The notes beneath the pieces were generated by a model. It searched no databases. It was not told the DNA's origin and was given only the letters and a program-made list of their open reading frames with translations. Of a DNA stretch of 64,000 nt, positions 13,149-61,648 are shown piece by piece (the first letter of the stretch is position 1; each line of letters starts with the position of its first letter). The DNA is taken from the sequence record NC_021529.2; one strand, given 5' to 3'. The position numbers and the translations under genes are program-made.

Positions 13149-14036
13149 ATGATTATTTTCGAACATCAAGACTCGCTTGTTGAAGCTTTTACGACACCTG
13201 CTCCGTATCGTTGGGCAGATGATAATAATATTGTGTTCAGAGTCGGGTCAACGAATTACCAGGCTAATATCAACTCATACGAGAACAGAAACACGCAGAG
13301 TCGAAATATAGACGTGTCATTTCAATGGCAGACTGAAAGCGGTAGATGGACGTTCACATTGAAAAAAAGTGATAATCCGAAAGATGCACTTACAGTGATC
13401 AGTACAATTCTGGCTGCTACATTCGAAAAAGAAGCAAAAGAGAAGCCAGATACGATTTCGTTTAGTGCGTTCACCGATGACAATGATAGAGACGCACAGA
13501 AGCGTTTCAAACTTTACAAACGAATTGCTGAGCGTTATGCAAAAGAGCGTAATTACACACTACAAGTTCATGATCGTTCTTTTCTTCTAACTAATAACGC
13601 GAAACCAAGTCAGATGAGACGATTCCCGAACGACGGCGTTATTGAAGAAGACGGTCTTGTTTATGCTGAATTCCCGCGTGTCAATGCGTTCACATGGGCT
13701 AAAATGTTCTGGCTTGACAATGCAGGTGATTACATCGACTTGTCTCTACCACATGGTCGTGTTAAGGTGACTCGAACATCAGAAGATGTAGTCACTGTCG
13801 ATGGGCGCAACGCAGAAGGCAAAATCGATAACTTAGATAGCTCTTATGTATGGCTGAGTATGCTTGGTGAGATTAAAGTTCGCACACGAACCGGTCGAGA
13901 ATTCACATTGTCTGAAAGGGGTGTTATACTTGACGCTGGTGACATGATTTTGTGTGACGATAAGACAATATATTACTTGTCAGATGAAGAAATGTTCGCT
14001 GATATTTGGGGTTACGATATTATCGAAATCGTATAA
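13149..14036 (+). CDS. Putative virion internal (ejected) protein, paralogue of 49992-50828
   Basis: Late promoter; N-terminus ...SLVE/AF; shares KDALTV, FSAF.D, KR..LYKR.AER motifs with 49992 ORF. Confidence 0.6.
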   Translation: MIIFEHQDSLVEAFTTPAPYRWADDNNIVFRVGSTNYQANINSYENRNTQSRNIDVSFQWQTESGRWTFTLKKSDNPKDALTVISTILAATFEKEAKEKPDTISFSAFTDDNDRDAQKRFKLYKRIAERYAKERNYTLQVHDRSFLLTNNAKPSQMRRFPNDGVIEEDGLVYAEFPRVNAFTWAKMFWLDNAGDYIDLSLPHGRVKVTRTSEDVVTVDGRNAEGKIDNLDSSYVWLSMLGEIKVRTRTGREFTLSERGVILDAGDMILCDDKTIYYLSDEEMFADIWGYDIIEIV

Positions 14037-14065
14037 AAGAAAAGGGAGCAAATGCTCCCTTTTTT
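14036..14065. terminator. Bidirectional terminator between convergent genes
   Basis: A-run GGGAGC-AAAT-GCTCCC T-run. Confidence 0.85.
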
Positions 14066-14067
14066 GA

Positions 14068-15726
14068 TCATGGTGTTAGAGGACTACGCTCTTTAACCAA
14101 TCGTTCTTCGTCAACCGTTGGTTCGGCTGCACGCATGAAGTCAGCGACTTCAGTTAGTTCATGAATTCGTTCTTGTCGTTTACGTTCAGAAAGAACACTG
14201 AATTTTTCATGCTTGTTCTTTTTCTTCAGTCTGATGACTGCATCGAATTCAGAAAGTTGAATCAGCTCAGCTTCAAACAATGTATTGCGATTGATGATGA
14301 ATTCGCAATCACCTTTCTTCCCATGCTTACCTGTTGCAAGAATCGGCAACCCTTCAGCTTCGATTACAAACACAACGTTCAATTTCTTATCAGTTTCAAG
14401 CATATCTAGCATTGTTGATTTGCTATTTTTATCGATTGCATTCACGATAGTTTTCGATGATGATTCAACGAAGTTACATGCAACAATAGGGTTTGTTGAT
14501 GATGAGATAAACGCAGTAGACGCAAATACCCCAGATTCAAGAATCGCACCAACTCGCTTGCTGCTCATTTCAGCACCACGGTACAATGTCATTGCACTAG
14601 CAGATTTACCCGCCTCAGCAAACGCATAATCGAGACGCTTAATGATGTCTGATGCTTTATCAGATTCAATGCCGTGTACCAATGCTTCATTCACTTTCCA
14701 CGCATATCGCGACGCAGAATAGCGAGAAATTGCAGCTTGCGTAAGCGACCCAAGCCCAGCGAATGAATCTTCTTGCATCAATAGCATAGAAAGACGCTCA
14801 TATTGCGCTTCAAGAGCACGAGAACGCGATTCAAGTAAGCAGTTGAATACATCACTAGGGTTTTTAGATTCGTGCATGTACGAGTTGATAGAGTTAGCAA
14901 GAACTGGTAGCTCAAGATTCATGTCAATCAATCCTTGTGCAGCCATTGCAATTTTCGACTCAGATTCAGTTAATGCAATTTCAGTTAAACGCGCATTGTG
15001 TGATGTGCTGTGATGCGATTCAAGTTGCGGCATTTGAAGAACTGCGTTCGGAACACGAGCAGCAGGATTGTCGCCAACCCACGTATCAAGAACAACGTCG
15101 TCGTAATCATCATATTCAGCACCAGCAGTAACGATGATTGTTTTCTTGCTTGAAATGTCAGTTTCTTGCGACATTTTAGCAGCAATCATGTTTACCGTTT
15201 CTTCAGACGCTTCGAATAGCTTGTCAGCGTTGTATCCTGGTTTTGTGATGACGAAGTAGCTGAAATCATCAACCATTTCAGATGTACCATCGTTAACGAT
15301 TTTAGTCGTCTCGCAGCCATAGCGTAGCTTTTTGAATAGCGTTTTTACGCGCATGTCAAACATTTTACCACTGCCAAGCTTTTGAATTCGCATCGATACG
15401 ACGTTTGCACGACGACTAAGCATGAAGTCGTAAACAAGCGTTACGATAGTTTCAATTAGTTTTTGCTGATCGCCCATTTCACGAATAGTCAACCCGCCTT
15501 TCTTTCCGCGCATAGCAGAAACAGTGCAGAACCAGCTACGTTTGCCACGATTGCCGATGTCTGATTTGGTTTTAGTAGTGAACGAAACAACGATGTCCCT
15601 AGCTTCGCCTTTCATATCGATCACAAAGAATTTGTTTTCTTTGGTCGAGCGAGCCGGATAGTAGTCGTATGTCGCGCTCATGTTTTCTGTTAATTGTTGA
15701 TATCCAATCATTTTGTATAGACTCAC
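14068..15726 (-). CDS. alt: Alt-like NAD:protein ADP-ribosyltransferase
   Basis: TLYRG, FISSS and DCEFIINRN match the R-S-E ART motifs; next to gene 30 as in T4; start could be 15711. Confidence 0.85.
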   Translation of the reverse strand: MSLYKMIGYQQLTENMSATYDYYPARSTKENKFFVIDMKGEARDIVVSFTTKTKSDIGNRGKRSWFCTVSAMRGKKGGLTIREMGDQQKLIETIVTLVYDFMLSRRANVVSMRIQKLGSGKMFDMRVKTLFKKLRYGCETTKIVNDGTSEMVDDFSYFVITKPGYNADKLFEASEETVNMIAAKMSQETDISSKKTIIVTAGAEYDDYDDVVLDTWVGDNPAARVPNAVLQMPQLESHHSTSHNARLTEIALTESESKIAMAAQGLIDMNLELPVLANSINSYMHESKNPSDVFNCLLESRSRALEAQYERLSMLLMQEDSFAGLGSLTQAAISRYSASRYAWKVNEALVHGIESDKASDIIKRLDYAFAEAGKSASAMTLYRGAEMSSKRVGAILESGVFASTAFISSSTNPIVACNFVESSSKTIVNAIDKNSKSTMLDMLETDKKLNVVFVIEAEGLPILATGKHGKKGDCEFIINRNTLFEAELIQLSEFDAVIRLKKKNKHEKFSVLSERKRQERIHELTEVADFMRAAEPTVDEERLVKERSPLTP

Positions 15727-15744
15727 CCTTTAGAAATATATGAG

Positions 15745-15752
15745 TATTTATG
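15745..15752 (-). promoter_or_regulatory. Late-promoter variant for alt
   Basis: CATAAATA on minus strand just upstream of alt. Confidence 0.6.
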
Positions 15753-15874
15753 GTAGTTAGTGAAGCTTGATTAAAAAAATACCACTTTTTGTTTAAAAAG
15801 TGCTTGCAATGTCCATCTGATAGTCGTAATATGTGTTCATCGAAACGAAATACACAAACATGAGAGTACAAATT

Positions 15875-17314: not shown

Positions 17315-17326
17315 TTCTCTCAATCA

Positions 17327-17766: not shown

Positions 17767-18660
17767 ATGACTGTATCTACTAGTAACGGTTTACCAGACA
17801 TTGTGACTGTTCAAAAACGTCTTTATCCGTTAATCTTTACGGAGATCGTTTCTGAGCAGGTAACAAAGCAACCAGTAGCAACCGCTTACGGATTCAAAGC
17901 TGTATCTGAAGCTGACGACGGTAGTGGTTGGACTCAATTCGGATTCAGACTTGATCGTTGGTATACTGAAGTTAAATCTTCAAAAATGAAGACTGAAATC
18001 TCACTTGAAACAATTCAAGATCTGCAAGCTCTTGGTGTTAATACTACCATCATTGCTGGGTCATTAGCTGACCAAATTGCAGATGAGATCAATACTGACA
18101 TCATCAATGCACTGAACGGAATTTCAACAGTTGGGACAGCTCTTGTACTTGCTGGTACAACAGACTTTGACAAAGGTCAAGATCTGTATGCTAAAGTTCA
18201 CGTGTCTGCTGCTGAAATTGAAAAATCAACTGGATGTCAAGGCACTTATGTAGTTGCTGGCGGGAAATGCTTCGGTCTACTTACAGGCTGTGGTGTTGTT
18301 AAGAAAATCAGCGATACTGTTTACCAAGCATGGTCTGGATTGTACATCGTACACGATAAATATGCAACATCTGATTATGTGACAGTTGGCGTTAAGAAAG
18401 AACTTGGTGATTATGAGATCTCAAGTATCGTATTCAGCCCATATGTCTTTGATAGCGAAACCGAAGGCGCTATTGCTTATCAATACAAAGGGACTGATCC
18501 GAAATCATTCCACTCTGTGTATGGTGTTATTTCACGATACGCACTGACAGTTGCTCCACTTGAAGAAACTCAAACTGGCGCAGTGGAAATCGATTGGGAC
18601 AACCTTGGCGCATTAGCGAACAGTTCTAAGCTGTCTTACACTCATGCAGTGACAGTATAA
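17767..18660 (+). CDS. 24: Capsid vertex protein (gp23/gp24 family), short form
   Basis: KRLYPLIFTEIVSEQVTKQP, LADQIADEINTDII, SIVFSPY, YGVISRYALTVAP resemble gp23/gp24; late promoter. Confidence 0.75.
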   Translation: MTVSTSNGLPDIVTVQKRLYPLIFTEIVSEQVTKQPVATAYGFKAVSEADDGSGWTQFGFRLDRWYTEVKSSKMKTEISLETIQDLQALGVNTTIIAGSLADQIADEINTDIINALNGISTVGTALVLAGTTDFDKGQDLYAKVHVSAAEIEKSTGCQGTYVVAGGKCFGLLTGCGVVKKISDTVYQAWSGLYIVHDKYATSDYVTVGVKKELGDYEISSIVFSPYVFDSETEGAIAYQYKGTDPKSFHSVYGVISRYALTVAPLEETQTGAVEIDWDNLGALANSSKLSYTHAVTV

Positions 18661-18668
18661 GGTGTGAC

Positions 18669-19184
18669 ATGAAAAATCATTATGTAGATAATAAAGCTCT
18701 ATACGCATCGTTGTGCGAATGGAAAGAAGAAATGAAAACGGCACCTGAAGATGTTCATGTGCCTGTACCGAATTTTGTAGCTGAGAGTATTTTGAAAATC
18801 AGCGAAAATCTATCGAGACGTTACAACTTTAGCGGTTACACAGCAACGTGGAAAGAAGAAATGATTGGTGACGCAATCGAGCACTGTTTGCGTTACATCA
18901 AAAACTTTGACACTGAAAAATACAAAAATCCACACGCTTATATAACTCGAATCTGCTTTAACGCATTTGTTCAGCGTATCAAGAAAGAACGTCAAGACAC
19001 TGCGATTAAATATAAAGTATTCTTATGCGATTCGTCTAACTATTCAATGGACGGTGAAGAAGCTGATTATGAGTTTCTTCAACAGATGCTGGAACGTGTC
19101 AACTCTTACGAAACGAGTAAGAAAGACAAGGCTCAACCAGACGAAAAGAACGAACCACTGAACTTACAAAAATTTTACAATTAA
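18669..19184 (+). CDS. 55: Late transcription sigma factor
   Basis: HYVDNKAL, NFSGYT..WKEEMIGDAIE, NPHAYIT.ICFNAFVQRIKKE. Confidence 0.96.
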   Translation: MKNHYVDNKALYASLCEWKEEMKTAPEDVHVPVPNFVAESILKISENLSRRYNFSGYTATWKEEMIGDAIEHCLRYIKNFDTEKYKNPHAYITRICFNAFVQRIKKERQDTAIKYKVFLCDSSNYSMDGEEADYEFLQQMLERVNSYETSKKDKAQPDEKNEPLNLQKFYN

Positions 19185-19193: not shown

Positions 19194-20639
19194 ATGTTAG
19201 GTAACTTTGACTCATTTCTGAGTGAAAATCGCCGTCAAACTCAGGGTGGTAAAATCTACCCTAAGTTTGGTCAAGTTATTGTTGAGCTAGGCACTGCATC
19301 TACTGAGTTCAGCAACGGCAAAGGCGTTGAAACAACTATCGGCATGATGGAAAAGGCAAATGAGCTTAAATCTATCATGGAACAAAAGCTATGCGAAGAT
19401 CCAAACGTTAATCATAATATGTTTGACATGAATCTGAGTGAAAATGTAAGCACCGTCAACTTGCTTATGGAAAACGAATTCCTAGCAATGCCAGCGCATT
19501 CACTACAGCAAGTTAAGTCGATGATCATGTGTACTGAAGCGCGTCTTCCGAGTCTTGTGATCAAAGGTGGTGACTTGAATAAGGTTGTGACTGAAGCAAC
19601 TAAGCTTGGTTACAAGCAAAAAGACATCCACGTTGTTATCCCAATGAGCGAAATGAAAATCGTTCTTGCAGATTCGGATAAGTTGGTCATTGAATCACTT
19701 TCATTTGACGGTCTTACTGCGTCTGAAGTATTAGCAAAAGCAGCAACAATCAATCTTGGTGACGTATACGTTACAGTTGAAAGCGTGTCTAGCGAAGCTC
19801 AACTTTCAGAAATGAAAGAGATCAAGATCAAGACAGCGAATCGAGCAATGACTCTTGGATCTCTTAACCGTCATGTCATGGAGCACTTCGTTGTTAAAGA
19901 AGCGAAAGAAGTTTCATATGCGCGTGAAGTAGCAAAAGACACTGGTCTACCAATGCTAGAAGGGTTCAAGGCATACGATTTCAAACGTAATATCACTATG
20001 ATCGAACATGCTCAGAACGTATTCACTAAAGAGATTGCGCGTGCTCCGATGTCTGCAACTGCATGGCAAAACCTAGTTGACGTTAAAGAAGCGTACTTCG
20101 ATAACGGCTGGAAACTGAAACATAACAACACCAGCATTGTTCTTACAAATGCTCGTGACGCAATGCGTGCTAATCGTGTATGTGAAGAATATCGCGTTGA
20201 GCTATCGGAAGCGGGTTACCCACTTCTTGATATGGTAGCAATGATGGAACGTAAAGGCGTTAAGTACTTCGATTGTCAGTCATTTGCTAAAGCAATGGTT
20301 GAATTTGATGGTTGTGTTACACCAGAGCGTCAAACTGTTACTGCATTCGTTACTGAATCAGCATCAAATCGCGTATTCCATCCTCAGATGATGTCTAGTC
20401 TTCGCCCAGTAACTGAAATGGTTGATAGCGTAGATGAGCTTGTTCGCGCACTTGCTAATGACCAGTTTAGCGAATTCCGTGTTTCTGAGTCGATTGCTGA
20501 GTCAATGCTAGATAAAGAAACTCTTTACAGTATGATGGAAAAAATCATCAGTGAAGGCGTTGACGTTAATATCGATGGTAAACTAGTTGAATTCACTGTG
20601 TCTGACACTAAATACAGCATTAACATTGATATTAAGTAA
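19194..20639 (+). CDS. Hypothetical protein with CTS-like N-terminus, possibly a degenerate P-loop
   Basis: MLGNFDSFLSE/; GKIYPKFGQVIVELGTASTEFSNGKG. Confidence 0.6.
   Translation: MLGNFDSFLSENRRQTQGGKIYPKFGQVIVELGTASTEFSNGKGVETTIGMMEKANELKSIMEQKLCEDPNVNHNMFDMNLSENVSTVNLLMENEFLAMPAHSLQQVKSMIMCTEARLPSLVIKGGDLNKVVTEATKLGYKQKDIHVVIPMSEMKIVLADSDKLVIESLSFDGLTASEVLAKAATINLGDVYVTVESVSSEAQLSEMKEIKIKTANRAMTLGSLNRHVMEHFVVKEAKEVSYAREVAKDTGLPMLEGFKAYDFKRNITMIEHAQNVFTKEIARAPMSATAWQNLVDVKEAYFDNGWKLKHNNTSIVLTNARDAMRANRVCEEYRVELSEAGYPLLDMVAMMERKGVKYFDCQSFAKAMVEFDGCVTPERQTVTAFVTESASNRVFHPQMMSSLRPVTEMVDSVDELVRALANDQFSEFRVSESIAESMLDKETLYSMMEKIISEGVDVNIDGKLVEFTVSDTKYSINIDIK
20607..20614 (+). promoter_or_regulatory. 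Late-promoter variant
   Basis: ACTAAATA, ATG at 20648. Confidence 0.55.
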
Positions 20640-20647: not shown

Positions 20648-21295
20648 ATGAAAAAATTCGATACATTTTTGACTGAAGTTCAGAAATACAGCTCAGCAGC
20701 AACGTCTATCAAAGGCAAAGAAGTAGCAGCGTTAGTTAAATTGTTCAAGTCAGGCATGTTTGTGCCTGGCGGAACTGCACTTGACTACGGCGCAGGTAAA
20801 TACGGTCGTAACGCAGAGTTCTTGCGTTCTCAAGGTATTCGTACTTACGCATATGACAAGTTCAACGGTACGTCTGCTGACGGTTGGGATGCAGTTAGTT
20901 TGTCTGTGCCAAATGGCATGACATTCGACACTGGCTTTACTTCATACGTTCTGAACGTTGTTCCAGAGTCAGTTGAAGCTGAAATCGTTCGCGAAGTCGA
21001 GTCGTTAACAACTGGTAAAGTGTTCCACATCACTCGTGGTACTGACATTACACAAACTGTGTTTAATGTGATTTCTGGTAAATCTAAAAATGACGTGATG
21101 ATGCAGTTCGTTGCTCAAGAATATCCAGAGATTTATGGTCAGATTGTCGCTAACGGCGGTACTAAAGAATTAGCTAAAGAAATTGCAACTCGTGGTGTTG
21201 TAACAGCTAAAGACAGCTTTCAACGTATTCCAGACTTATCAAAGTACGGTTACAGAAAGTCTGGTTCAGGCGCATCTGTCGTGTGGACAAAATAA
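20648..21295 (+). CDS. Class I SAM-dependent methyltransferase with capsid-targeting-like N-terminus
   Basis: ALDYGAGKYG (motif I), YAYDKF, FTSYVLNVV; MKKFDTFLTE/ N-terminus. Confidence 0.8.
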   Translation: MKKFDTFLTEVQKYSSAATSIKGKEVAALVKLFKSGMFVPGGTALDYGAGKYGRNAEFLRSQGIRTYAYDKFNGTSADGWDAVSLSVPNGMTFDTGFTSYVLNVVPESVEAEIVREVESLTTGKVFHITRGTDITQTVFNVISGKSKNDVMMQFVAQEYPEIYGQIVANGGTKELAKEIATRGVVTAKDSFQRIPDLSKYGYRKSGSGASVVWTK

Positions 21296-40004: not shown

Positions 40005-40081
40005 ATAAAAACCCCATCGATGTCTCAATGGGGTTTTTCGTTTAATTCTAAATAGAATAAACAACATCAAAAGGTAATATA

Positions 40082-41746
40082 ATGAAACTGTTTACTGAAT
40101 TTTATCAAGAAGTGCGTCTTGACGAAATCTCAGACCGCGCCAATATCGATATTGATTGGGATTGGGGTCATGAGAACGGCACTGGCGAAACTTCAGCACG
40201 TTTTAACGCTGCTGGCGAGGATTTCAGCGTAAGCGTTGACGAAAATAATCCTGGTTATTTCACTATTTCGTTCCAAAACTCAGGTGGTTATTCACAGACT
40301 GGTCGCGCTGGTCACTCTGCGGCTGCTGTATTCTCTGGTGTATTGACTACACTACGTGAATTCACTGAGACGTATGAAGAAGAAATGGATAAAAAGCCAT
40401 ACGAATACGATTTCAGTGCTGCGTATGAGCTACCGAGAAATCATGAGTACTACGCTCTACAAAATAATCGCAGAGAAGCACAACGCTTAGACGAAGAAAG
40501 CAAGAAAAAGCTATTGAAAGATCTAATCTCTCGCCCGATGCTTTACTACGCACTATCATTGACGTTTGGTAAAGAATACGGTTACTCGACTGACATTAGT
40601 GATCGCTGGCTTGAGCGTCTAGCAGGTGGTGCTAACGATTTCCGCTCTGTTCGTAAGAACGTAACTCGTGCTATTCTTTCAATGAGTGACAACGATGTCA
40701 ATCAAGCACTTATGCAAATGAGTGGTTCAGTTGGCTTCACGCTTACAAACCAACATCAAAATTCATACGATTACGATGCTCCGTTCGGTCAAGCAAGTCT
40801 AGAAGACACGATTGACGATGCTGATCAATATCAAATCGAAGCATGGATTAATGACGGTCGCGAAGATGAAATTCTAGAACACGCAGATTGGCGAACACTA
40901 GTTCGTATCGCTGAATGGGGTCTGATGCACGATGAACTAATTTACCATGATGATGCGGACGTTCGAGCCGCAGTAATGCGCACGGATTATGAAATGGGTG
41001 ACAAGCTTGCACAATCAAGTGACCCTGATCATCGACAAGAAGCTGCTGAAAATGGGTTTTCTATCTGGGAACTTGTTCTTGACTCAGACGACGACGTTCG
41101 CGAAGCTGCGTGGGATTGGTCTTTTGAGAATGACGACGCAGATACACGAATCGACTATGCAAAACGTATCAAGAGCGAAATGGGTCGATCTATTGCAGAA
41201 GACTTCTGGGACAGAATGATTGATGATGTAGACGACTACGAAGACCGCGTTTACGTTGCTGAACAAGGCTATCGCCTTGAAGAACTAGTTGATGATCATG
41301 ACGAAGATGTTCGACAAGCAGCAATGAACTACTACTTCAACAATTACGGTTCTGAAGACGCTGTTGGATCAATTCTCGAATACGGTGATGCTTATCGTGA
41401 AGAGAACTTCGCATACATCATGGGTGGTAACTTCGGCCCATCTGCTGAAGAAAAAGCAATCGAACTTGCGAAAGAAAATGATGTAGATGTGAGCGAATAT
41501 GTTCGTACTTCAGACATCACATGGTACAAGTGGAATGATCCTGTTGCTGATATGAAAGTTGTCGATGAAGAAGGCACTGAATTTGATATTCAAATTACCG
41601 CGCAGGATGATGGTAACTTTACCATTGTCATTGACGGTGATGAAACTTCTGACATTCCATTCAGTGACATCTATAGTATTTTCAAGACTGAGTACGGCAT
41701 TAATATAGATGATTACACTTATGTGTACGATGATTTAAATAATTAA
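40082..41746 (+). CDS. Very acidic putative internal protein with HEAT-like repeats
   Basis: MKLFTEFYQEVRLDE/; L..D.D.DVR.AA repeats; TCTAAATA at 40047. Confidence 0.7.
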   Translation: MKLFTEFYQEVRLDEISDRANIDIDWDWGHENGTGETSARFNAAGEDFSVSVDENNPGYFTISFQNSGGYSQTGRAGHSAAAVFSGVLTTLREFTETYEEEMDKKPYEYDFSAAYELPRNHEYYALQNNRREAQRLDEESKKKLLKDLISRPMLYYALSLTFGKEYGYSTDISDRWLERLAGGANDFRSVRKNVTRAILSMSDNDVNQALMQMSGSVGFTLTNQHQNSYDYDAPFGQASLEDTIDDADQYQIEAWINDGREDEILEHADWRTLVRIAEWGLMHDELIYHDDADVRAAVMRTDYEMGDKLAQSSDPDHRQEAAENGFSIWELVLDSDDDVREAAWDWSFENDDADTRIDYAKRIKSEMGRSIAEDFWDRMIDDVDDYEDRVYVAEQGYRLEELVDDHDEDVRQAAMNYYFNNYGSEDAVGSILEYGDAYREENFAYIMGGNFGPSAEEKAIELAKENDVDVSEYVRTSDITWYKWNDPVADMKVVDEEGTEFDIQITAQDDGNFTIVIDGDETSDIPFSDIYSIFKTEYGINIDDYTYVYDDLNN

Positions 41747-43721: not shown

Positions 43722-44777
43722 TTATGGTCTGTAGATCATATGATCAGAGCCCATACGTTCCCAATCACCACTGTTCATGCGTCTTTTCATTTCATCGAAT
43801 AACGCAGGGTTAGCTCGAATATCGTTTAATGGTAGAGCAACAACACCTTCTGTTTTGTGAGCTAGTAACTCAAGTTTATCAAGCAGATCGCTTGATGTTC
43901 TACCGTCGTACTTGAATTCACTAAACCAATAACCAATCTTACTGAACTTACGATCTCTGGTGTATTTCACATCGAACCCTTTCAATGCATACAGCAAGCT
44001 ACTTTCTTTGCCATGAAACGGCTTTTTGTATTCGCTGTGTTCAGCACCAGCACGAGCAAGTAATCGTTTCTTAGCCTCTTCTGGTATATTGAACCAACCA
44101 TCGAAATTATTCTTAAATCGATTCATCCATGCTTCAGCAGTTGCAGGCGAGCCTTTAAACTGAGATTTCGTATCAGCAATTGCTTGTGCATATCGTGCGT
44201 TAATCTCATGAGAATAGTTCTGATATTCGTCGTGAGACGCTTTGTGACCGGCTTTAGCGTGTTTGACGAACTCTTTATCGATATAAGCTCTATTACGCCC
44301 TGAGTGTTGATACACGCCGTCTTCGTCGCGTGTCTCGAAGTCTTCTATATCACCAGAACGCCAGTTATCGTATGCATGTTGCAGTTCGTGCAATGCAGTA
44401 CTGTACATTTGTTCTTTCTTGACTCTGAACTTTGCCATAATCTGACTAACAGCAGTTACACCAGTGATGTCAACGGTGATTTGCAAGTTACCTGCTTCAC
44501 CAGCGTCTGGGTCGTGTAAAGCACCACGCCAAACACCCATTTCAGTTGGTGATTGATTGTCGAGCTTCAGATACGCGACGATACCACGTTCTAGCAATGC
44601 ATCGAATTTGCTTTCACCAGTTTTGATGTTCAGACTCTTGGTATTGATTGCAAGATTGTTCGGATCGAATGGTCTTGTTGATAATGCATATTCCAACTGT
44701 GTTTCAAGTCGGTCAACGATAAACTTTGCTGCGTACTCTAATGCACGCTGAGATTGAACGCTTTCAAAAATAATCAT
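43722..44777 (-). CDS. Zincin-like metallopeptidase, putative late/virion protein
   Basis: TALHELQHAYD (HExxH) and downstream HEINARY; ACTAAATA on minus strand at 44810-44817. Confidence 0.75.
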   Translation of the reverse strand: MIIFESVQSQRALEYAAKFIVDRLETQLEYALSTRPFDPNNLAINTKSLNIKTGESKFDALLERGIVAYLKLDNQSPTEMGVWRGALHDPDAGEAGNLQITVDITGVTAVSQIMAKFRVKKEQMYSTALHELQHAYDNWRSGDIEDFETRDEDGVYQHSGRNRAYIDKEFVKHAKAGHKASHDEYQNYSHEINARYAQAIADTKSQFKGSPATAEAWMNRFKNNFDGWFNIPEEAKKRLLARAGAEHSEYKKPFHGKESSLLYALKGFDVKYTRDRKFSKIGYWFSEFKYDGRTSSDLLDKLELLAHKTEGVVALPLNDIRANPALFDEMKRRMNSGDWERMGSDHMIYRP

Positions 44778-44852
44778 CTTTTTTCTCTAAAACTATTGAC
44801 TGTATATCTTATTTAGTTTAATATCTCTTACATAGAAACAAGAGAGAACATT

Positions 44853-49701: not shown

Positions 49702-49995
49702 ATGAGAGAAGCTATTGCATTATTAAGCAACACAAAAATTGGATATACTGACATCAGCGCGTTTGGCGATCCAGTATTATTTGTTCATGCAGGTCGTGAG
49801 ACAGTACTAAAGGTACAATATACCGAAGACTGCTATTCGTTTTACGATTATCGAAGTAAATACTTGTATGAAGAACAGACAATCGATGATCTTGAGATTC
49901 ACCTCAAATCAATCGAAATCGGTCTAGACGACGATCTACCCTTGAATGGTAATGTCGATTTAGAAACGATACCAGATGGGGAATTTTTAGAGTGA
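49702..49995 (+). CDS. Hypothetical protein
   Basis: Operon packing. Confidence 0.6.
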   Translation: MREAIALLSNTKIGYTDISAFGDPVLFVHAGRETVLKVQYTEDCYSFYDYRSKYLYEEQTIDDLEIHLKSIEIGLDDDLPLNGNVDLETIPDGEFLE

Positions 49996-50828
49996 AATTT
50001 AGCGAATATCAAAACGAACTAAACGAAGCGTTTGACCGACCAGCACAGATCACAAATAGACGTGGAAATCAAAGTTATTTCATGATTGGTCAGAATGAAT
50101 ACATGATTGGTTTGTATTACGATGATTCCGAGAGAAAACTATCAGTTGATTTCATGATGAGACCGGCAGGCGAGTCATCATACTATTACACATTGGCAAA
50201 AGGCGACACTAAAGACGCATTGACTGTGTTCGCAACGGTGATTTCAGAAATCAAACGTAAAATGAAGACTGATATTGTAAATATTATCGAGTTTAGTGCA
50301 TTCGCTGATTCTGATAGCTCAGATGCTCGTAAACGTGAGCGATTGTACAAGCGCATGGCAGAACGATTCAGCAAAGAAATTGGGTTCAAACTATCTGCAA
50401 GTAGTGGAGACTTTGTTCTACATCGAACCAAAATAGTTGAAGCGCCAACTGGTTATGATACAGCGTGGGGAACTGAAACACTTGATGTCAATCTAATCAA
50501 TGACGCAGCGATTGTGAAAGTGACTGGTGGTGACGGTGAATGGCGTCTCGATGACTGGAATAAGCTAATCGTCAAAGACGGAAAAGTGACATTAACATCT
50601 GGATCAATCAACTCCGATGATGCGTGGTATGATGCATTCTTCGATCTTGAATGGGACGATGGTGATGAAGAGTGGATTGATGGCGAGCAAGAGATTGCGA
50701 TTATCAATGGCAAAGTATGGGTCATTAATGGCACTGAAATCACCATATGGAAGAGCATTTCAGATCTTGAAATGCAAAGTGAAGGTTTAACGCTATCAAG
50801 TACTACATTGCATACGTTGGGATATTAA
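49992..50828 (+). CDS. Putative virion internal protein, paralogue of 13149-14036
   Basis: MKFSEYQNELNE/AFD; shared KDALTV and KRERLYKRMAERF; acidic C-terminal domain. Confidence 0.65.
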   Translation: MKFSEYQNELNEAFDRPAQITNRRGNQSYFMIGQNEYMIGLYYDDSERKLSVDFMMRPAGESSYYYTLAKGDTKDALTVFATVISEIKRKMKTDIVNIIEFSAFADSDSSDARKRERLYKRMAERFSKEIGFKLSASSGDFVLHRTKIVEAPTGYDTAWGTETLDVNLINDAAIVKVTGGDGEWRLDDWNKLIVKDGKVTLTSGSINSDDAWYDAFFDLEWDDGDEEWIDGEQEIAIINGKVWVINGTEITIWKSISDLEMQSEGLTLSSTTLHTLGY

Positions 50829-52907: not shown

Positions 52908-53584
52908 ATAGCGTACAAGATAAATCAGTTCTAATGGGTGATGAATTACTTTTCAGTGAAAGCGAATGGGTTCCATTCGATACGATGAACACTGAAAAGA
53001 AAATTCTATCAAACCCAATATTCGACGAAGGTCTGAACAGAATTATCAAGCAGTACACTCCGAAAACAGACACAGCGTTTATTTCGCTGTGTACTACTAC
53101 TCGACCATATGAAAATAGTCGCAAGTGGAAAACGTTCATGGAAACGTTTGGTAGTAGTGCTGACTTGATTGTTATTTCGAACGGCGGGGTAATACCACAG
53201 CAGTTTTGGCACAGTTATCCGTATCTGAACTACGATGGTGACCCAAAAGTCAATCCACAAACTGAACTTTATTGTGAAATCTGTGAAGAACGTGTTTATC
53301 GTTTCTTCAGTCAGGTGAAGTTCAAAAACATCGTCGCGAACTTTAAGCACGTACAACGTAACACTGAAGCAATCAAGAGCGCGTTGAAGCGACTTAAAGA
53401 CGACGGTCACATTGAAAACTATGTTGTTCTACCAACTGTTGAGCAGTATGAAGAATTGCAGTCTCGTGGGTTCCCGAAAGGGAAAGTTTTCCCAGATGTC
53501 GATGATAAGATACTTGAACACTTGCGTTCGGCAGTACATTCGTACTCGCCACCGAAAGAAAATAGCTTAGCTAACTTCTTTTAG
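52904..53584 (+). CDS. ArcS/DUF5591-like protein
   Basis: FISLCTTTRPYENSRKW and VISNGGVIP..F..SYP..NYD resemble the archaeosine synthase core; position in cluster. Confidence 0.6.
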   Translation: MNSVQDKSVLMGDELLFSESEWVPFDTMNTEKKILSNPIFDEGLNRIIKQYTPKTDTAFISLCTTTRPYENSRKWKTFMETFGSSADLIVISNGGVIPQQFWHSYPYLNYDGDPKVNPQTELYCEICEERVYRFFSQVKFKNIVANFKHVQRNTEAIKSALKRLKDDGHIENYVVLPTVEQYEELQSRGFPKGKVFPDVDDKILEHLRSAVHSYSPPKENSLANFF

Positions 53585-53640
53585 TGTTTAAATACAACTC
53601 TCATCGTGTATAATACATTCTCAACAAGTGAGGAAATAGA

Positions 53641-54315
53641 ATGGCATTTAATAAAGAGAAATGCGACGCTGAACTAGGTCGCAAAATTGAAGAACATCTT
53701 CGTGAAATCGGTATGAACACACCAATGCGTGAAGATAACGGTATCACTGATGATGTGAAAATTCAATACATCGAATCGTCTTTCACTGACATCATGAATG
53801 TGTTGGGTTTAGATTTATCTGACGATTCGCTTGTTGACACGCCACGTCGTGTAGCAAAAATGCTAGTTAAAGAGACAATGTGGGGTCTGAAGCCAGAGAA
53901 CTTTCCTAAGTGTACTGCAATCGACAACAAGATGAACTACGATGAGATTGTATGTGAAACTGGTATTACTGTCATGTCGCAGTGTGAACATCACTTCGTG
54001 ACAATTGATGGTAAAGCAACAGTTGCTTACATCCCTAACAAGAAAGTTCTTGGCTTGTCTAAGATGAATCGCATTGTTGAGTATTTCAGTCGTCGCCCTC
54101 AAGTGCAAGAGCGTTTAACGATTCAAATCGCTGAAGCTCTAAAGCTTATCTTAGAAACTGACAACGTAGCAGTAGTTCTAGACTGTGAACACTATTGTGT
54201 TAAGTCTCGTGGCGTTGAAGATCACACATCAAGCACGGTGACAAGTAGCTTGTCTGGTGTGTTTCGAACAAAGCCCGAAGCACGTGCTGAGTTCATGGCA
54301 CTAGCAAGAAAGTAA
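53641..54315 (+). CDS. folE: GTP cyclohydrolase I
   Basis: DTPRRVAKM, SQCEHHF, VLGLSK, RRPQVQERLT, HYCVKSRG. Confidence 0.97.
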   Translation: MAFNKEKCDAELGRKIEEHLREIGMNTPMREDNGITDDVKIQYIESSFTDIMNVLGLDLSDDSLVDTPRRVAKMLVKETMWGLKPENFPKCTAIDNKMNYDEIVCETGITVMSQCEHHFVTIDGKATVAYIPNKKVLGLSKMNRIVEYFSRRPQVQERLTIQIAEALKLILETDNVAVVLDCEHYCVKSRGVEDHTSSTVTSSLSGVFRTKPEARAEFMALARK

Positions 54316-54400
54316 ATCAGAAACGCACATTATGTGCGTTTTTTTGTTTAAGTAGTTCATAAAAATGATAATATAATTGAGCTAACAAGAGAGGTTTACA

Positions 54401-55795
54401 TTGATTATTGAATACGTAATGTCAGCGACTGGACATGCTCGTCTTAGTACTGCATATAAGCTTAGAGATAAAGTTGATATAACTTATCTCCGAGACATTT
54501 TAAACGCTGCACAAAACTTAGACGGCGTTCACAAGATCAGTATGCTTTATAACGCATACACTGAGAAGAAAATTGGTCGAGAACTGCGTGAGATTTTTGG
54601 TGATTCAGTTTACAAGATTCACGTTGACTCTGGCGGTCTACAGATGATCACCCTCGGACTCGACAACACACCAGAATTACGTGCTGGTGTTTACAAGAAT
54701 CAAGCAGAATCTGGTGACATTGGTATGTGTTTCGATGAAATCCCAATTCACAACACGTCGAAAGGTGGTGGTGCTGCACGATTAAACGCGAACGATAAAG
54801 TATTCATCAGCGACATGGCATATGAATATGGTGTTCGTTCTGGCAAGAACATCAAAGATCAGATAGAAGCATATCTTGCAGATGAAAGTCAGTGCAAACC
54901 GTATGTAATCTTTCATGGTAACACTGAAGAAGACTACATGAATTACTGTGATGGTATGATGTCTCAGCTTAAAGGGCTTGAGCATCACATTGCTGGCTGT
55001 GCGGTTTCTGGTGCTGCGATTGGGTATGATTCTCGTGAAACAATCGACATGATGAGCGTTGTTCGTAAACTGAACATCCCAGAACACATCAAAAAGTCTG
55101 TTCACATGCTTGGGTTTGGTTCTGTCAAGCGTCTACTACCGTCTATCGCTCTTATACGCAGCGGTTACTTCGGTGACGACTTTCATATCAGCTACGACTC
55201 TTCGACTCACACGGGCTGTTTGACGAATCGTGAGTACACGGATAAGCTTGGTCGTCGAATTAAGATTGAGGGACGCCCGCAGAAGAAGAACAAAGATGTT
55301 CAAGACGCATTTTCTATGATGCTGAATGCTCGTAACCCAGGCAGTGCGGTTGATGAATCGAAAGACTCTGAATCAACAGAGCTTCTTGACAACATGTTGT
55401 CTGAAGTATGGGGTCGATTCTCACATGTAATTCCGCGTTCTGAATCTGAATTCAAAGATTTTGCAACTAAAATGTGGTTTAAGAAGCTGAATCGAGAATC
55501 GTTATCAGAAGAAGATCAAGTGTTTGAAGTTGCATGTAATCTGTGTATCATTCTTTCACAAATCCTCAACTTTCAAGCGATTGTTTCTGAAGCATTCGAC
55601 TTGGACACTGATGGTAAAGAACGTGACGGGTTCGTCAAATGGTCGTCTAAACGTCGAATGTCAGTGCTTGATGACATCATCACGCATGATTCTCCAGAAG
55701 ACTTTGAGAACTGGTACAAGAATAACAGCAAACAATTGCCGTCTATTCGTATTCGACGCGGTACAACTGCTGAATACCCAGATTTTAAATCATAA
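54401..55795 (+). CDS. dpdA: DpdA-like (TGT-fold) DNA guanine transglycosylase
   Basis: VDSGGLQM, MCFDEIP, HMLGFG, SYDSST match TGT catalytic positions; no C-terminal CxCxxC zinc motif. Confidence 0.8.
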   Translation: MIIEYVMSATGHARLSTAYKLRDKVDITYLRDILNAAQNLDGVHKISMLYNAYTEKKIGRELREIFGDSVYKIHVDSGGLQMITLGLDNTPELRAGVYKNQAESGDIGMCFDEIPIHNTSKGGGAARLNANDKVFISDMAYEYGVRSGKNIKDQIEAYLADESQCKPYVIFHGNTEEDYMNYCDGMMSQLKGLEHHIAGCAVSGAAIGYDSRETIDMMSVVRKLNIPEHIKKSVHMLGFGSVKRLLPSIALIRSGYFGDDFHISYDSSTHTGCLTNREYTDKLGRRIKIEGRPQKKNKDVQDAFSMMLNARNPGSAVDESKDSESTELLDNMLSEVWGRFSHVIPRSESEFKDFATKMWFKKLNRESLSEEDQVFEVACNLCIILSQILNFQAIVSEAFDLDTDGKERDGFVKWSSKRRMSVLDDIITHDSPEDFENWYKNNSKQLPSIRIRRGTTAEYPDFKS

Positions 55796-55870
55796 GTTGT
55801 TTAATATATCATGAAATTGGCTATAATGAGTGTTCAGGATGAGCACTCAATAGCTTCGAGAGGTTATAAA

Positions 55871-56587
55871 ATGAAAGTAGTTTCTGTTTTAAGCGGTGGT
55901 CTTGACAGTACAATTCTCACATACAAGCTAGTAAATGATTTCGGTGCAGACAATGTGTTTGCTCTATCGTTCTACTACGGTCAAAAACAGTCAATTGAGC
56001 TAGAAAAAGCTAAGTTGACGTGTCAAAAGCTCGGCATCGAGCATCGTCTAATCGATATTTCGTTCTTAGGTGAAGTTGTAGCGCCAGTCTGTGCGAATAT
56101 CGCAGGCTCAGAAGTTGCAATGCCGACTATTCAAGACGTTCTAGGCGACCCTCAGCCGCCAACTGAAGTTCCATATCGTAACATGCTATTGAATACAATT
56201 GCGTTCTCGTTTGCTCAAGCAAATGGTTGTTCTGCTGTGTTCACTGGCATTCAAGTGCATGACGCATACGGGTATTGGGACTGTACACAAGACTTCCTTG
56301 ATGGTATGAATCAAATCTCATCGTTGAATCGCCAGCATGAAATCACACTACACGCACCGTTTGCTCAGATGTCAAAAGCAGATGAAATCAAGATTGGTCT
56401 TCTGCTAGGTGTCCCGTTCGAAGATAGTCTAACTTGTTACGACCCGAACGAAGCAGGTGAAAGTTGTGGTGTATGTCCATCATGTGCTGAACGCATCATG
56501 AACTTTGGCAAAGTCGGCATCAAAGATTCTGCGCCATATTCGAAACATATCCCATGGGAACAAGTATTTGCTAAGGCAGGTCATTAA
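55871..56587 (+). CDS. queC: 7-cyano-7-deazaguanine (preQ0) synthase
   Basis: VLSGGLDST, YGQKQ..EL, VPYRN, YWDC, CY...CGVCPSC.ER. Confidence 0.96.
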   Translation: MKVVSVLSGGLDSTILTYKLVNDFGADNVFALSFYYGQKQSIELEKAKLTCQKLGIEHRLIDISFLGEVVAPVCANIAGSEVAMPTIQDVLGDPQPPTEVPYRNMLLNTIAFSFAQANGCSAVFTGIQVHDAYGYWDCTQDFLDGMNQISSLNRQHEITLHAPFAQMSKADEIKIGLLLGVPFEDSLTCYDPNEAGESCGVCPSCAERIMNFGKVGIKDSAPYSKHIPWEQVFAKAGH

Positions 56588-57195
56588 TGTGCGGTTTATT
56601 TGCTGCTAGAAGCAAGCAAGAGCTTATTGAATTATCAAAAAGCAATCTACATCGTGGTTCGCGTACTCACTCTGTGAGTACGTTTAAGAACGGTCACGTG
56701 TCAGTACATAAATTCACTGGTGCATTCGATCCTGTCAATGTCCCTGACAGTGCAGATTTCTATATCTGTCACGTACAAGCACCAACTGGAACTAGTGCGC
56801 AAGCACATCCAGCTATTGTAACAGTCGATGAGAACGGTCAGTTACACGACTCACACGTGTGGCATAATGGCATTCTCAAAGATCATTACATGAAAAAGCA
56901 GACTCAAGATTGGGATACTGCACACATTGCTGAAGCTATTTGCTATGGCAAATTGAATGAGCTTGACGGTACATTCGCGTGTTTTCACTTCATCAACGGC
57001 AATTTACGTGTGTTTCGTAATGAAATCAGCCCGTTGTTCATGAACGAAGACGGCACAGCATTCAGTAGCACTAAGACGATTCTAACACCGTATCATGTTG
57101 ATGCGAATAAAGTGTTTAATATCGACTTGCGAACATTTAAACTATCGGTAGTGAGTGAGTTCAAGACACTCGAAAATCCATATTTCTTTTTGTAA
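56587..57195 (+). CDS. Stand-alone class II (Ntn) glutamine amidotransferase
   Basis: N-terminal MCG, CHVQAPT, WHNGIL, WDT, DGTFA; TAATG coupling to queC. Confidence 0.85.
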   Translation: MCGLFAARSKQELIELSKSNLHRGSRTHSVSTFKNGHVSVHKFTGAFDPVNVPDSADFYICHVQAPTGTSAQAHPAIVTVDENGQLHDSHVWHNGILKDHYMKKQTQDWDTAHIAEAICYGKLNELDGTFACFHFINGNLRVFRNEISPLFMNEDGTAFSSTKTILTPYHVDANKVFNIDLRTFKLSVVSEFKTLENPYFFL

Positions 57196-58312: not shown

Positions 58313-58316
58313 GTCA

Positions 58317-59241: not shown

Positions 59242-59317
59242 CTTTTTCTCAAAAAGTTATTGACTATGCTATTGTTTATATGTACAATACGAAAGAAATT
59301 TCTAATAAGGAAATAAC

Positions 59318-59572: not shown

Positions 59573-59581
59573 GGGAAAATT

Positions 59582-60565: not shown

Positions 60566-60568
60566 TAA

Positions 60569-60763
60569 TTGAAAAAACGTGCTTGGTTCTTTGTTTTTTG
60601 TGGGATTGGGGCAATAAGCTACTTCGGTGGCTTATTCGTCGCGTCATTACTCATATTCGAATCTGTTGAAGCATCTATATTATTCATCATTCTAGTGTTT
60701 TTAGCTCTATTAAATACAGTCAGAGCAGGCATCGAAGATGATGAGAACAACAAAGCTCCTTAG
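60569..60763 (+). CDS. Hypothetical membrane protein
   Basis: Two TM-like segments. Confidence 0.55.
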   Translation: MKKRAWFFVFCGIGAISYFGGLFVASLLIFESVEASILFIILVFLALLNTVRAGIEDDENNKAP

Positions 60764-60778
60764 GGAGCTTTTTTATAG

Positions 60779-61327
60779 GTGAATGAAATGGCATTTTTGA
60801 AGAAAGAGAAAGACACAAAAGACATCACAGAAGCAGATATGCAGTACGCAATAGCAGTACAAAGCGTATGGATTCATAAACGCTATACAGCAGTAGTGCC
60901 TAACTGCTATACTAAATGGGATAACGAAGCAGACTTATTTGCTATTAGACCAAGTGGGTTGTGTGATGAGATTGAAATCAAGGTGTCTAAAGCTGACTTT
61001 CGAATCGATGAACAAAAGTCTGTTAAAGTGATTGACGAAAGTACACCGAATCTGCGTTGGCATCGTTATGAAGACGTTCCAAAACGCACAGCATTGCAAG
61101 ATGGAAAGATGAGCAACTACTTTTGGTATGCATTCCCTAAAGGGCTTGTAGACCATGCTGAAGTCCCAGAATGGGCAGGTATAATCGAAGTCGATGGGTT
61201 CTTAAATGCCAGAGAAGTTCGAATGCCAAAACGACTGCACGGTGGTAAGATGACACTCGAAGAGCAGTTAAAACAAATCAAGAAGCTGGGTTACCGTTTT
61301 TGGAATCTAGTTAAAAAGAACCGATAA
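60779..61327 (+). CDS. PD-(D/E)xK nuclease-fold protein (MmcB-like)
   Basis: EADLFAI...EIEIKVSKADF..D, NYFWYAFP, WAGII. Confidence 0.75.
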   Translation: MNEMAFLKKEKDTKDITEADMQYAIAVQSVWIHKRYTAVVPNCYTKWDNEADLFAIRPSGLCDEIEIKVSKADFRIDEQKSVKVIDESTPNLRWHRYEDVPKRTALQDGKMSNYFWYAFPKGLVDHAEVPEWAGIIEVDGFLNAREVRMPKRLHGGKMTLEEQLKQIKKLGYRFWNLVKKNR

Positions 61328-61339
61328 CAAGGAATAACA

Positions 61340-61648
61340 ATGAAAACTTTCAATGAATTTTTAGCTGAAGCTCAACACATGTATGAGCTACCACCTGGGT
61401 ATGAAGTATTCGGTCTAGTAGATGTAGATGGGAAAGAGGTTGAACTCCATTCAGACGATGTGATGCGTGACGAATTAACAAGAGTTGCAAACGCACGTAA
61501 CGTAGCTATTGCAACTGGTGGTGTTTCTTCAGAAGAAGCAGGTGTATTAATCACCAAAGGCGGTAAAGAAGTTGATTACTTCCCGCATGAAGATAAAGCA
61601 AGTGGTCCACGCTTTAAAAACTTCGTGAAACGTCACTTCAAGGTCTAA
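61340..61648 (+). CDS. Putative internal head protein
   Basis: MKTFNEFLAE/ closely matches the T4 IP capsid-targeting sequence MKTYQEFIAE. Confidence 0.7.
   Translation: MKTFNEFLAEAQHMYELPPGYEVFGLVDVDGKEVELHSDDVMRDELTRVANARNVAIATGGVSSEEAGVLITKGGKEVDYFPHEDKASGPRFKNFVKRHFKV

Follow-up and report, generated by a model that had tools for sequence, protein, structure and literature searches.

Does the final 64 kb of the Vibrio phage nt-1 genome encode a dispersed set of proteins that are packaged in the phage head and enter the host with the DNA? The 64-kb stretch analysed here (the window) corresponds to positions 183512-247511 of HQ317393.2 with 100% identity, and nt-1 is a 248-kb KVP40-like phage of the T4 family that infects Vibrio natriegens. 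The original prediction named eight open reading frames (ORFs) with similar N-termini, five of them preceded by late-promoter-like octamers. When the sequence was re-read, all eight ORFs with their N-terminal peptides and all five octamers (13118, 15745(-), 20607, 40047, and 44810(-)) were recovered exactly. Seven of the eight are annotated as 'hypothetical' in the nt-1 record and the remaining one is alt; the KVP40 GenBank record labels all counterparts hypothetical, alt too. The nt-1 genome paper discusses internal proteins for the T4/PST pair only and names none in nt-1 (PMC4122927). Our analysis indicates that most of the listed ORFs are probably T4-type internal head proteins. A dispersed set packaged by the T4 leader-protease route is well supported for six of the eight, membership of ORF403 is plausible, and that of ORF331 is doubtful. 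The eight ORFs are as follows, with ↓ marking a known or predicted cleavage point.

ORF324, 13149..14036, + strand: leader MIIFEHQDSLVE↓A, with I-F-E at residues 3-5 and L-V-E at 10-12.
alt, 14068..15711, - strand: leader MIGYQQLTE↓N; DUF6934-like at residues 5-123 (nt 15343-15699); predicted Alt-type ADP-ribosyltransferase at residues 280-546.
ORF331, 19194..20639, + strand: leader-like MLGNFDSFLSE↓N, a strict motif match.
ORF332, 20648..21295, + strand: leader MKKFDTFLTE↓V, then a predicted small S-adenosylmethionine (SAM)-dependent methyltransferase.
ORF364, 40082..41746, + strand: leader MKLFTEFYQE(VRLDE↓I); DUF6934-like at residues 13-117 (nt 40118-40432).
ORF369, 43722..44777, - strand: leader MIIFE↓SVQSQRALE; motifs HELQH...D..RS and HEINARY.
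ORF383, 49992..50828, + strand: GTG start; leader MKFSEYQNELNE↓A; DUF6934 at about residues 13-147 (nt 50028-50432).
ORF403, 61340..61648, + strand: 102-aa protein resembling the T4 internal proteins (IPs); leader MKTFNEFLAE↓A, which shares 7 of its 10 residues with the T4 IPII/IPIII leader.

All 405 annotated nt-1 proteins were used to count leaders. A loose rule (an aromatic residue, then [LI]xE, within the first 15 residues) matched 27 N-termini where 17-20 were expected; it therefore does not discriminate and was discarded as evidence. A strict rule modelled on the IPII/IPIII leaders taken from the T4 record matched 10 N-termini, against 0.58 expected with internal positions as background. 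Column-wise permutation of the N-termini, which preserves start-proximal composition bias, gave a mean of 0.60 and a maximum of 5 strict matches over 2000 permutations. P values for the strict rule are optimistic because the rule was set after the data had been inspected; the enrichment is nevertheless large. Half of the strict hits fall inside the window (ORF331, ORF332, ORF364, ORF383, and ORF403) and half outside (ORF010, ORF179, ORF184, ORF188, and ORF196), where ORF179-196 adjoin tRNA genes and genes 57B, 1, and 3; T4 ipI sits in the equivalent place. The similarity proposed for all eight N-termini therefore divides into five of the strict IPII/IPIII type and three, ORF324, ORF369, and Alt, that match the loose rule only. 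These three (MIIFEHQDSLVE, MIIFES..., and MIGYQQLTE) resemble the short T4 Alt leader, MELITE↓L. Leader codons differ from gene to gene, so it is the peptide that is conserved and not recently copied DNA.

The likeness to T4 leaders that had been proposed is borne out at the positions mapped there. In the T4 record, ipII and ipIII start with MKTYQEFIAE↓A and ipI with MKTFKEFTS...ITE↓A. The first ten residues of IPIII are enough for packaging, with the aromatic residues 4 and 7 serving targeting and residues 8 and 10 processing (PMC9026906), and the gp21 protease cleaves after L/I-x-E (PMC9026906; PMC9958956). All four mapped positions are matched by ORF403 (MKTFNEFLAE), ORF332 (MKKFDTFLTE), and, outside the window, ORF196 (MKTFDEFVTE); ORF331 agrees after a one-residue shift. 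An Asp at position 10 of the T4 leader prevents cleavage and leaves targeting intact. The targeting aromatics are F4 and F7 in ORF403, ORF332, and ORF364, F5 and F8 in ORF331, and F3 and Y6 in ORF383. ORF324, ORF369, and Alt have a single aromatic, at position 4, in place of two. An L/I-x-E is present in all eight leaders (L-A-E, L-T-E, L-S-E, L-N-E, L-D-E, I-F-E/L-V-E, I-F-E, and L-T-E), although Glu10 of ORF364 has Y-Q before it and the earliest true L-x-E there ends at residue 15.

Late transcription was assessed from the octamers. NNTAAATA has 116 sites in the genome, 55 of them within 80 nt upstream of a same-strand gene (47% vs 6.5% by position). TATAAATA has just 16 copies, 14 of them so placed, and the genes behind it include gp18, gp22, gp23, gp24, gp25, and wac together with four leader genes; NNTAAATA variants also precede gp4, gp6, gp9, gp19, gp34, gp36/37, and gp48. 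An octamer lies 21-33 nt before the start of 10 of the 13 leader genes, compared with 38 of 392 others (Fisher p = 5e-8). Given this enrichment and the usage at undoubted late genes, the resemblance to late promoters holds, and we take the NNTAAATA octamers to be genuine late promoters in nt-1. Those of the five window genes (ORF324, alt, ORF332, ORF364, and ORF369) stand 23-33 nt upstream, and four of the five (all but that of ORF332) are conserved in KVP40. The ORF332 octamer (20607) was not conserved in KVP40 or in the related phage 6E35.1a.

13118..13125, + strand: late promoter TATAAATA, 23 nt before ORF324 and right after a terminator hairpin; kept in KVP40 and 6E35.1a.
15745..15752, - strand: late-promoter variant CATAAATA, 33 nt before alt; kept in KVP40 and 6E35.1a; also upstream of both gp36+37 tail-fibre genes.
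40047..40054, + strand: late-promoter variant TCTAAATA, 27 nt before ORF364, after a terminator-like hairpin; kept in KVP40; also upstream of gp19, gp34, and gp48.
44810..44817, - strand: late-promoter variant ACTAAATA, 32 nt before ORF369; TAAATA core retained in KVP40; also upstream of gp4.
17767..19184, + strand: gene 24, for the head vertex protein, and gene 55, for the late sigma factor; a TATAAATA copy lies at 17701.

No strong + strand terminator was found between 17701 and the end of ORF332, so both ORF331 and ORF332 could be read from the gene 24 late promoter. The octamer nearest to ORF331 is ATTAAATA at 19005, about 180 nt upstream and within gene 55. The start of ORF383 overlaps the end of ORF382 with no octamer nearby (AGTAAATA lies at 49855), and ORF403 begins 12 nt after ORF402.

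The leader proteins were then compared with a published virion proteome. In a 2025 study of Schizotequatrovirus phages, mass spectrometry of 6E35.1a particles yielded a list of 94 proteins out of about 442, the authors' only comment on the list being that structural genes were confirmed (PMC12028318). Orthologues of nt-1 proteins were mapped by PHROG id (Table S8 of that study), and spectral counts were taken from its Table S4 for two replicates.

ORF324: VP6E351A_0094, spectral counts 16 / 61.
alt: VP6E351A_0095, spectral counts 122 / 233.
ORF332: VP6E351A_0103, spectral counts 31 / 79.
ORF364: VP6E351A_0134, spectral counts 58 / 109.
ORF369: VP6E351A_0140, spectral counts 18 / 25.
ORF383: VP6E351A_0154, spectral counts 37 / 51.
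ORF331: VP6E351A_0102, not detected.
ORF252 (outside the window): VP6E351A_0018, spectral counts 9 / 14.
ORF253 (outside the window): VP6E351A_0019, spectral counts 21 / 34.
ORF157 (outside the window): VP6E351A_0357, spectral counts 18 / 4.
ORF174 (outside the window): VP6E351A_0377, spectral counts 3 / 0 (marginal).

Against a base rate of 94/442 (21%), detection of six of the seven assessable window candidates has P = 5e-4, and detection of 10 of 11 leader proteins genome-wide has P = 2e-6. The presence in virions claimed for the set is thus seen for the orthologues of ORF324, Alt, ORF332, ORF364, ORF369, and ORF383, and not for that of ORF331. A check independent of the nt-1 candidate list was made on the 18 small genes of the 6E35.1a tRNA/IP locus. 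Three have a leader plus a late octamer (MKTLQEFLAE↓A, MKTLAEFLGE↓A, and MSDKTFDQFMSQLDE) and all three were detected in virions; the remaining 15 yielded one marginal detection.

The head-assembly machinery that such a route would use is present. Genes for gp20, gp21, gp22, gp68, and gp23 are annotated at 141-146 kb of the record, outside the window, and those for gp24 and gp55 lie inside it. T4 gp22 and gp21 are cleaved many times, and no other nt-1 protein of known function is as dense in [LI]xE as these two (3rd and 5th of 260 overall). T4 gp22 is cut at a glutamyl-alanyl bond (PMC9026906), and the prohead protease removes 10 N-terminal residues from T4 gp24 (PMC9958956). ORF332 and ORF403 contain no [LI]xE besides the leader site. 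ORF331 has 11 such sites, yet ranks an unremarkable 44 of 260, and was not retained as a scaffold-like protein degraded in the head.

Half of the candidates share a further element. ORF324 and ORF383 are paralogues across residues 1-147 only, and a profile of this region retrieved 309 representative proteins among 1.84 billion, in which it is stand-alone (140-180 aa), N-terminal, or internal and repeated in proteins of up to 2300 aa. Of 69 long members scanned, 49 match Pfam DUF6934 (PF22028), down to 1e-23. In a direct Pfam scan of the candidates, Alt alone matched DUF6934, at an E value of 0.017 that falls below the cut-off. A DUF6934 hidden Markov model built from 45 distant stand-alone members only, and run on the nt-1 proteome, gave five matches: ORF252, ORF383 (3e-31), ORF324 (8e-31), ORF364 (residues 13-117, 1e-7), and Alt (residues 5-123, 2e-4). 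Since ORF324, ORF383, ORF364, and Alt are all positive, four of the eight candidates have the order leader, DUF6934, variable C-terminal domain, with the module beginning immediately behind the predicted cleavage Glu. Hundreds of metagenomic phage proteins show the same coupling of leader and DUF6934. The C-terminal domains are mutually unrelated; one is an ADP-ribosyltransferase and one consists of HEAT-like repeats.

The DUF6934 family as a whole carries the leader signature at its N-terminal junction. In an alignment of 59 diverse members, the Glu predicted to precede the cut (P1) is one of just two invariant columns. Among 81 N-terminal members, leader length peaks at 9-10 residues, P3 is L/I in 83%, and P1' is A/S in 69%, followed by F-D-x-P-Y. 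P3 to P1 correspond to the gp21 motif L/I-x-E, and the frequent Ala at P1' is reminiscent of the glutamyl-alanyl cut in gp22. Many members bear near-copies of the T4 leader, such as MKTFQEFFTE↓AFDSP and MTTFKQFISE↓AFDKPY. In 6E35.1a, the ORF324 orthologue begins with MIIFE↓AFSRP, so that its short I-F-E leader abuts the DUF6934 junction. Domains co-occurring with DUF6934 are GNAT, cytidylyltransferase-like, poly(A)-polymerase head, HD, SLT, cytidine deaminase, NT5C, and ParB-like nuclease; further fusion partners are nucleotidyltransferases, a zeta-toxin domain, and ADP-ribosyltransferases.

Predicted viral structures that match the ORF324 fold come from Agrobacterium phage Atu_ph07, where one protein has a zeta-toxin domain, and from Ackermannviridae-type phages, and they include Alt/ADP-ribosyltransferase proteins of Aeromonas phiAS5, Citrobacter CF1, and Salmonella Melville. 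Against the PDB (Foldseek), the ORF324 model gave weak acetyl-CoA-binding, GNAT-like hints (E 0.09); at that level we do not claim an acetyltransferase for ORF324. At tblastn sensitivity, searches of cultured phages with DUF6934 members returned KVP40-like vibriophages only. T4 Alt was not assigned to the family (profile E 26), and the LFD directly after its cleavage Glu resembles the family junction. No statement on DUF6934 function was found in the literature searched. We interpret DUF6934 as a shared module that carries or retains variable cargo. We also entertain, with somewhat more doubt than belief, that it could be a widespread capsid-delivery module of T4-like and other large myoviruses, carrying interchangeable effectors behind a cleavable targeting peptide into the head and then into the host. 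If that is true, whole sets of injected effectors could be recognised directly in phage genomes and metagenomes by the motif leader-(L/I)-x-E↓A-F-D-x-P.

The fifth DUF6934 match, ORF252 (record 151654-152574, - strand, outside the window), has the module internally (residues 164-295), preceded by NLTE↓AFDKP, the junction that ORF324 and ORF383 have at their N-termini. This may be an internal protease site that frees two fragments. Its orthologue, VP6E351A_0018, was labelled 'Defense?' by the authors of the proteome (PMC12028318).

Direct scans of the eight proteins against Pfam, NCBIfam, PDB sequences, and PADLOC gave nothing significant except for Alt. PADLOC returned no match for the candidate set, and related-locus searches with single proteins found near-identical relatives only, or none. 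Alt matches PHROG 802 at E 9e-85 over residues 280-546 and has 30% BLASTP identity to T4 Alt over residues 327-419. The ADP-ribosyltransferase named in the original prediction is upheld by the PHROG match, and by homology we assign Alt as an Alt-type ADP-ribosyltransferase. Its C-terminus (14068-14190, - strand) reads ...IHELTE↓VADFMRAAEPTVDEERLVKERSPLTP, an L-T-E site 26 residues before the end; C-terminal processing has been reported for T4 Alt as well (PMC9026906).

A methyltransferase had also been proposed, and this holds for ORF332 as a predicted SAM-dependent enzyme. Its own profile matches are sub-threshold (TehB and a dnd-related methyltransferase, E 0.03-0.06), but many of its 233 homologues match PF13489 (Methyltransf_23), one is named a SAM-dependent methyltransferase, and the protein contains LDYGAGKYG as a candidate Rossmann motif I. 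Across 112 anchored family members, [LIVMF]xE occurs at residues 5-14 in 76%, vs 23% of interior windows, and a PLExGGTSIxG block is conserved about 20 residues from the N-terminus. Near-T4 leaders occur on some members (for example, MKQFSEFLSE and MKSFSEFITE), one of them on a T4-like metagenomic contig. The whole family of small phage methyltransferases may be head-packaged. A TAAATA upstream of a distant homologue lies within a terminator loop and was not counted as a late promoter.

The peptidase assignment for ORF369 is not supported. HELQH and HEINARY are invariant in 16 sequences, and the first 14 residues, which come 22nd among 337 windows in conservation, are on a par with these catalytic-looking motifs. 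The AlphaFold2 (AF2) model is confident (predicted local distance difference test [pLDDT] 85), yet Foldseek found no PDB fold match better than E 0.27, and there were no Pfam, NCBIfam, or PDB-sequence matches. With HExxH present and the zincin fold unmatched, 'peptidase' is a guess; we do not class ORF369 as a zincin metallopeptidase and describe it as a putative metal-dependent hydrolase. The C-terminal region of ORF364 is acidic with HEAT-like D-x-D-x-x-VR-x-AA repeats (HEAT matches are weak). In ORF324, DUF6934 (about residues 13-150, nt 13185-13598) is followed by a separate beta-rich C-terminal domain; its AF2 model has a pLDDT of 91, falling to 60 over residues 1-10, with a domain break at 156-159. 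The C-terminal domain of ORF383 is unrelated to that of ORF324. No functional assignment was obtained for ORF403 or for the C-terminal domains of ORF324 and ORF383, and no family or orthologue was found for ORF403.

The features above fit a mechanism like that of the T4 internal proteins. The genes would be transcribed by the gp55 late apparatus, from TATAAATA-type promoters of their own or in late or mixed operons. An N-terminal propeptide of 5-15 residues would recruit each protein to the gp22/gp68 scaffolding core of the prohead, where the gp21 prohead protease would trim it after (I/L)-x-Glu. The mature protein would be retained in the filled head and, like T4 IPI and Alt, be expected to exit together with the DNA when the phage infects. 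ORF403, ORF332, ORF364, and ORF383 would use a long, IPII/IPIII-like targeting leader, as would ORF331 in form, and ORF324, ORF369, and Alt a short, Alt-like one (MIIFE, MIGYQQLTE). We infer the cleavage at the predicted Glu, the head location, the injection, and an anti-defence role from the T4 precedent.

Several observations weigh against this mechanism. The virion data come from the relative 6E35.1a and not from nt-1, and the particles were precipitated with polyethylene glycol (PEG) with heads and tails unseparated. The list holds probable contaminants at low counts (single-stranded DNA-binding protein, ligase, dUTPase, and thymidylate synthase). Counts are at the protein level only, so processed N-termini are not visible in them. 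The leaders of ORF324, ORF369, and Alt are indistinguishable from chance on sequence alone, and the conserved Glu at the DUF6934 junction may have a structural role instead of marking a cut. Three genes (ORF331, ORF383, and ORF403) lack a late octamer of their own, ORF403 is not assessable in 6E35.1a virions, and the ORF331 orthologue VP6E351A_0102 is absent from the list. In ORF331, which is confined to KVP40-like phages, residues 1-35 form one conserved block, and in one relative the would-be cleavage Glu is replaced by Ala. It is probably outside the packaged set or does not persist in the mature particle.

Two other explanations would keep some of these observations without head packaging through a cleaved leader. 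The proteins could be virion-associated parts of the tail, baseplate, neck, or decoration, or sticky late proteins that co-precipitate, with the leader likeness incidental. The unfractionated PEG preparation, the clear non-structural proteins in the list, and the chance frequency of the loose motif all allow for this, but we judge it very improbable. No candidate resembles a T4 tail or baseplate protein, Alt is head-internal in T4 (PMC9958956), the strict leader is 17-fold enriched, and in the 6E35.1a IP locus the leader separates detected from undetected small proteins. Candidate counts (20-230) are also well above those of likely contaminants (0-10). Alternatively, the N-termini could be structural or translational features (a first helix or strand, or a favoured AAA-ACN-TTY start) that are not cleaved, with DUF6934 an enzyme that acts in the producing cell, for example a degenerate GNAT. 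The junction E-A-F-D-x-P-Y does run on into the folded domain, ORF331 is conserved over its entire first 35 residues, fold hints are weakly GNAT-like (E 0.09; GNAT entries E 0.07-0.09), and seven DUF6934 relatives match Pfam GNAT families. A constraint on starts in general does not account for 10 strict leaders when column-permuted N-termini give 0.6, nor for leader codons that differ between genes, and the same leader type stands on unrelated folds (the methyltransferase, small IP-like proteins, DUF6934, and the HExxH protein). In addition, the ORF324 model shows a disordered leader, the P3/P1/P1' pattern is the gp21 motif L/I-x-E↓A (PMC9026906), and orthologues are present in virions, which together leave this explanation quite unlikely.

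It is also conceivable that packaged proteins of this kind help to assemble the head or condense the DNA, as accessories of the scaffold or DNA-binding internal proteins like T4 IPIII, instead of being injected effectors. In T4, IPIII has an effect on head morphogenesis and neither IPII nor IPIII has an established function (PMC9026906), KVP40-type heads are larger and longer than that of T4 (PMC3012670), and ORF364 is a highly acidic repeat protein without an enzymatic motif. An ADP-ribosyltransferase, a SAM methyltransferase, and an invariant HExxH protein make little sense in a DNA-filled head, however, and DUF6934 relatives are fused to deaminases, HD domains, nucleotidyltransferases, ParB-like nuclease, zeta-toxin, and ADP-ribosyltransferases. 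The ORF402/403 locus (60788-61648, beside rnlB) further exchanges its cargo gene between close relatives in the manner of an arms race: 6E35.1a has an unrelated leader gene, VP6E351A_0174, before the ORF402 orthologue (leader MKKFNEFAKELEE↓A, virion counts 12/17), and KVP40 has neither. By gene content, the locus appears to behave as a swappable cargo cassette. We therefore regard a purely assembly-related role as unlikely, and favour T4-type packaged proteins that would be delivered to the host.

Like the T4 internal proteins, the nt-1 set combines a leader of about 10 residues, aromatics at 4 and 7, and L/I-x-E at 8-10 (ORF403 MKTFNEFLAE vs T4 MKTYQEFIAE) with late promoters and mutually unrelated mature parts, and small variable proteins lie near tRNA-57B-gene 1, with ORF174-196 of nt-1 syntenic with T4 ipI. 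Past the leader there is no homology to them, and many of the nt-1 proteins that bear one are large, at 215-554 aa, resemble enzymes, and are encoded at scattered sites among replication genes. T4 Alt, which is packaged, injected, and processed by gp21, has its counterpart in nt-1 Alt, with an ADP-ribosyltransferase domain, an adjoining ligase gene, a late promoter (T4 alt has TATAAATA upstream), a short I/L-T-E leader (nt-1 MIGYQQLTE vs T4 MELITE↓LFD), and an orthologue abundant in 6E35.1a virions. The N-terminal half of nt-1 Alt, by contrast, is unalignable with that of T4 and is DUF6934-like. In the giant phages phiKZ and SPN3US, dozens of head-packaged ejection and inner-body proteins are processed by a T4-related, gp21-like prohead protease, which cleaves after Glu, and then enter the cell by ejection (PMC10052503, PMC7411985). 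Those phages belong to another lineage; the nt-1 leaders are of the T4 capsid targeting sequence (CTS) type, and the searches made found no homology. MuF-fused effectors and polyvalent proteins likewise pair a head-associated N-terminal module with variable enzymatic C-termini, including ADP-ribosyltransferases (PMC9503650). In nt-1 the module is DUF6934 with a T4-type leader that is predicted to be protease-cleavable, not MuF. Packaged methyltransferase activity is known from DarB of phage P1.

The kind of system described here, T4-type packaged proteins, is already known. The members and the coupling of leader and DUF6934 appear undescribed in the literature searched, although the KVP40 genome paper (Miller et al. 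2003) may mention CTS-like ORFs. The claim of a much larger payload than in T4 stands for the number of different proteins, roughly 15-20 genome-wide vs about four in T4 (IPI, IPII, IPIII, and Alt). For mass it is not demonstrable; when the spectral counts are crudely scaled to the portal, with its 12 copies, each protein would be present in only a few to about ten copies. To our knowledge, roles are known in T4 for IPI and Alt only. Entry with the phage DNA would mean action before phage gene expression, which would make these proteins prime candidates for counter-defence and host takeover. Leader, protease site, and late promoter together form a rule readable from sequence that picks about 15-20 proteins in a 248-kb vibriophage, and it agrees with an independent published virion proteome that was never so interpreted. 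A block of 'hypothetical proteins' becomes a testable list of packaged enzymes, and both Pfam DUF6934 and a large family of small phage methyltransferases gain their first functional context. Vibrio natriegens and nt-1, a laboratory pair that grows fast and is non-pathogenic, are offered as a study system.

One further candidate in the window, absent from the original prediction, is weak.

ORF312, 7681..7941, + strand: 86-aa protein starting MLKSFIELNE↓M; octamer ATTAAATA 19 nt before the gene, at 7654.

Its syntenic counterpart VP6E351A_0082 has marginal virion counts (3/0). Outside the window, ORF157 (record 72583-73689, + strand), which has a strongly acidic C-terminal tail, shares an (F)YHGTS motif with VP6E351A_0174 (L017 1505-2098, - strand). 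Both bear leaders, were detected in virions, and may be additional packaged enzymes. ORF178 (record 89385-89474, - strand, outside the window) encodes 29 aa with a late octamer and the leader MSDKTFDVFMSE; it looks like a truncated copy of the 74-aa 6E35.1a virion protein VP6E351A_0380. KVP40 has two tandem paralogues (0115 and 0116) in place of the single nt-1 ORF383. The annotated start of KVP40.0116 (L008 37469-38353) yields MVKPRNNGILKMKFSEYQNELTE, and the true start is probably an internal Met that gives the leader of nt-1 ORF383.

Two other loci in the window were noted. The segD homing endonuclease gene (30923-31426, - strand) is flanked by regA and gene 43 and preceded by a perfect TATAAATA at 31456, 29 nt upstream; SegD appears to be a late-expressed homing endonuclease. 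A 7-deazaguanine (queuosine-type) gene cluster at 51975-57195 encodes a 6-pyruvoyl-tetrahydropterin synthase-like protein, GTP cyclohydrolase I, and ExsB/QueC, and fits the known DNA modification of the phage group to which nt-1 belongs. GTP cyclohydrolase occurs at low counts in the 6E35.1a virion list.

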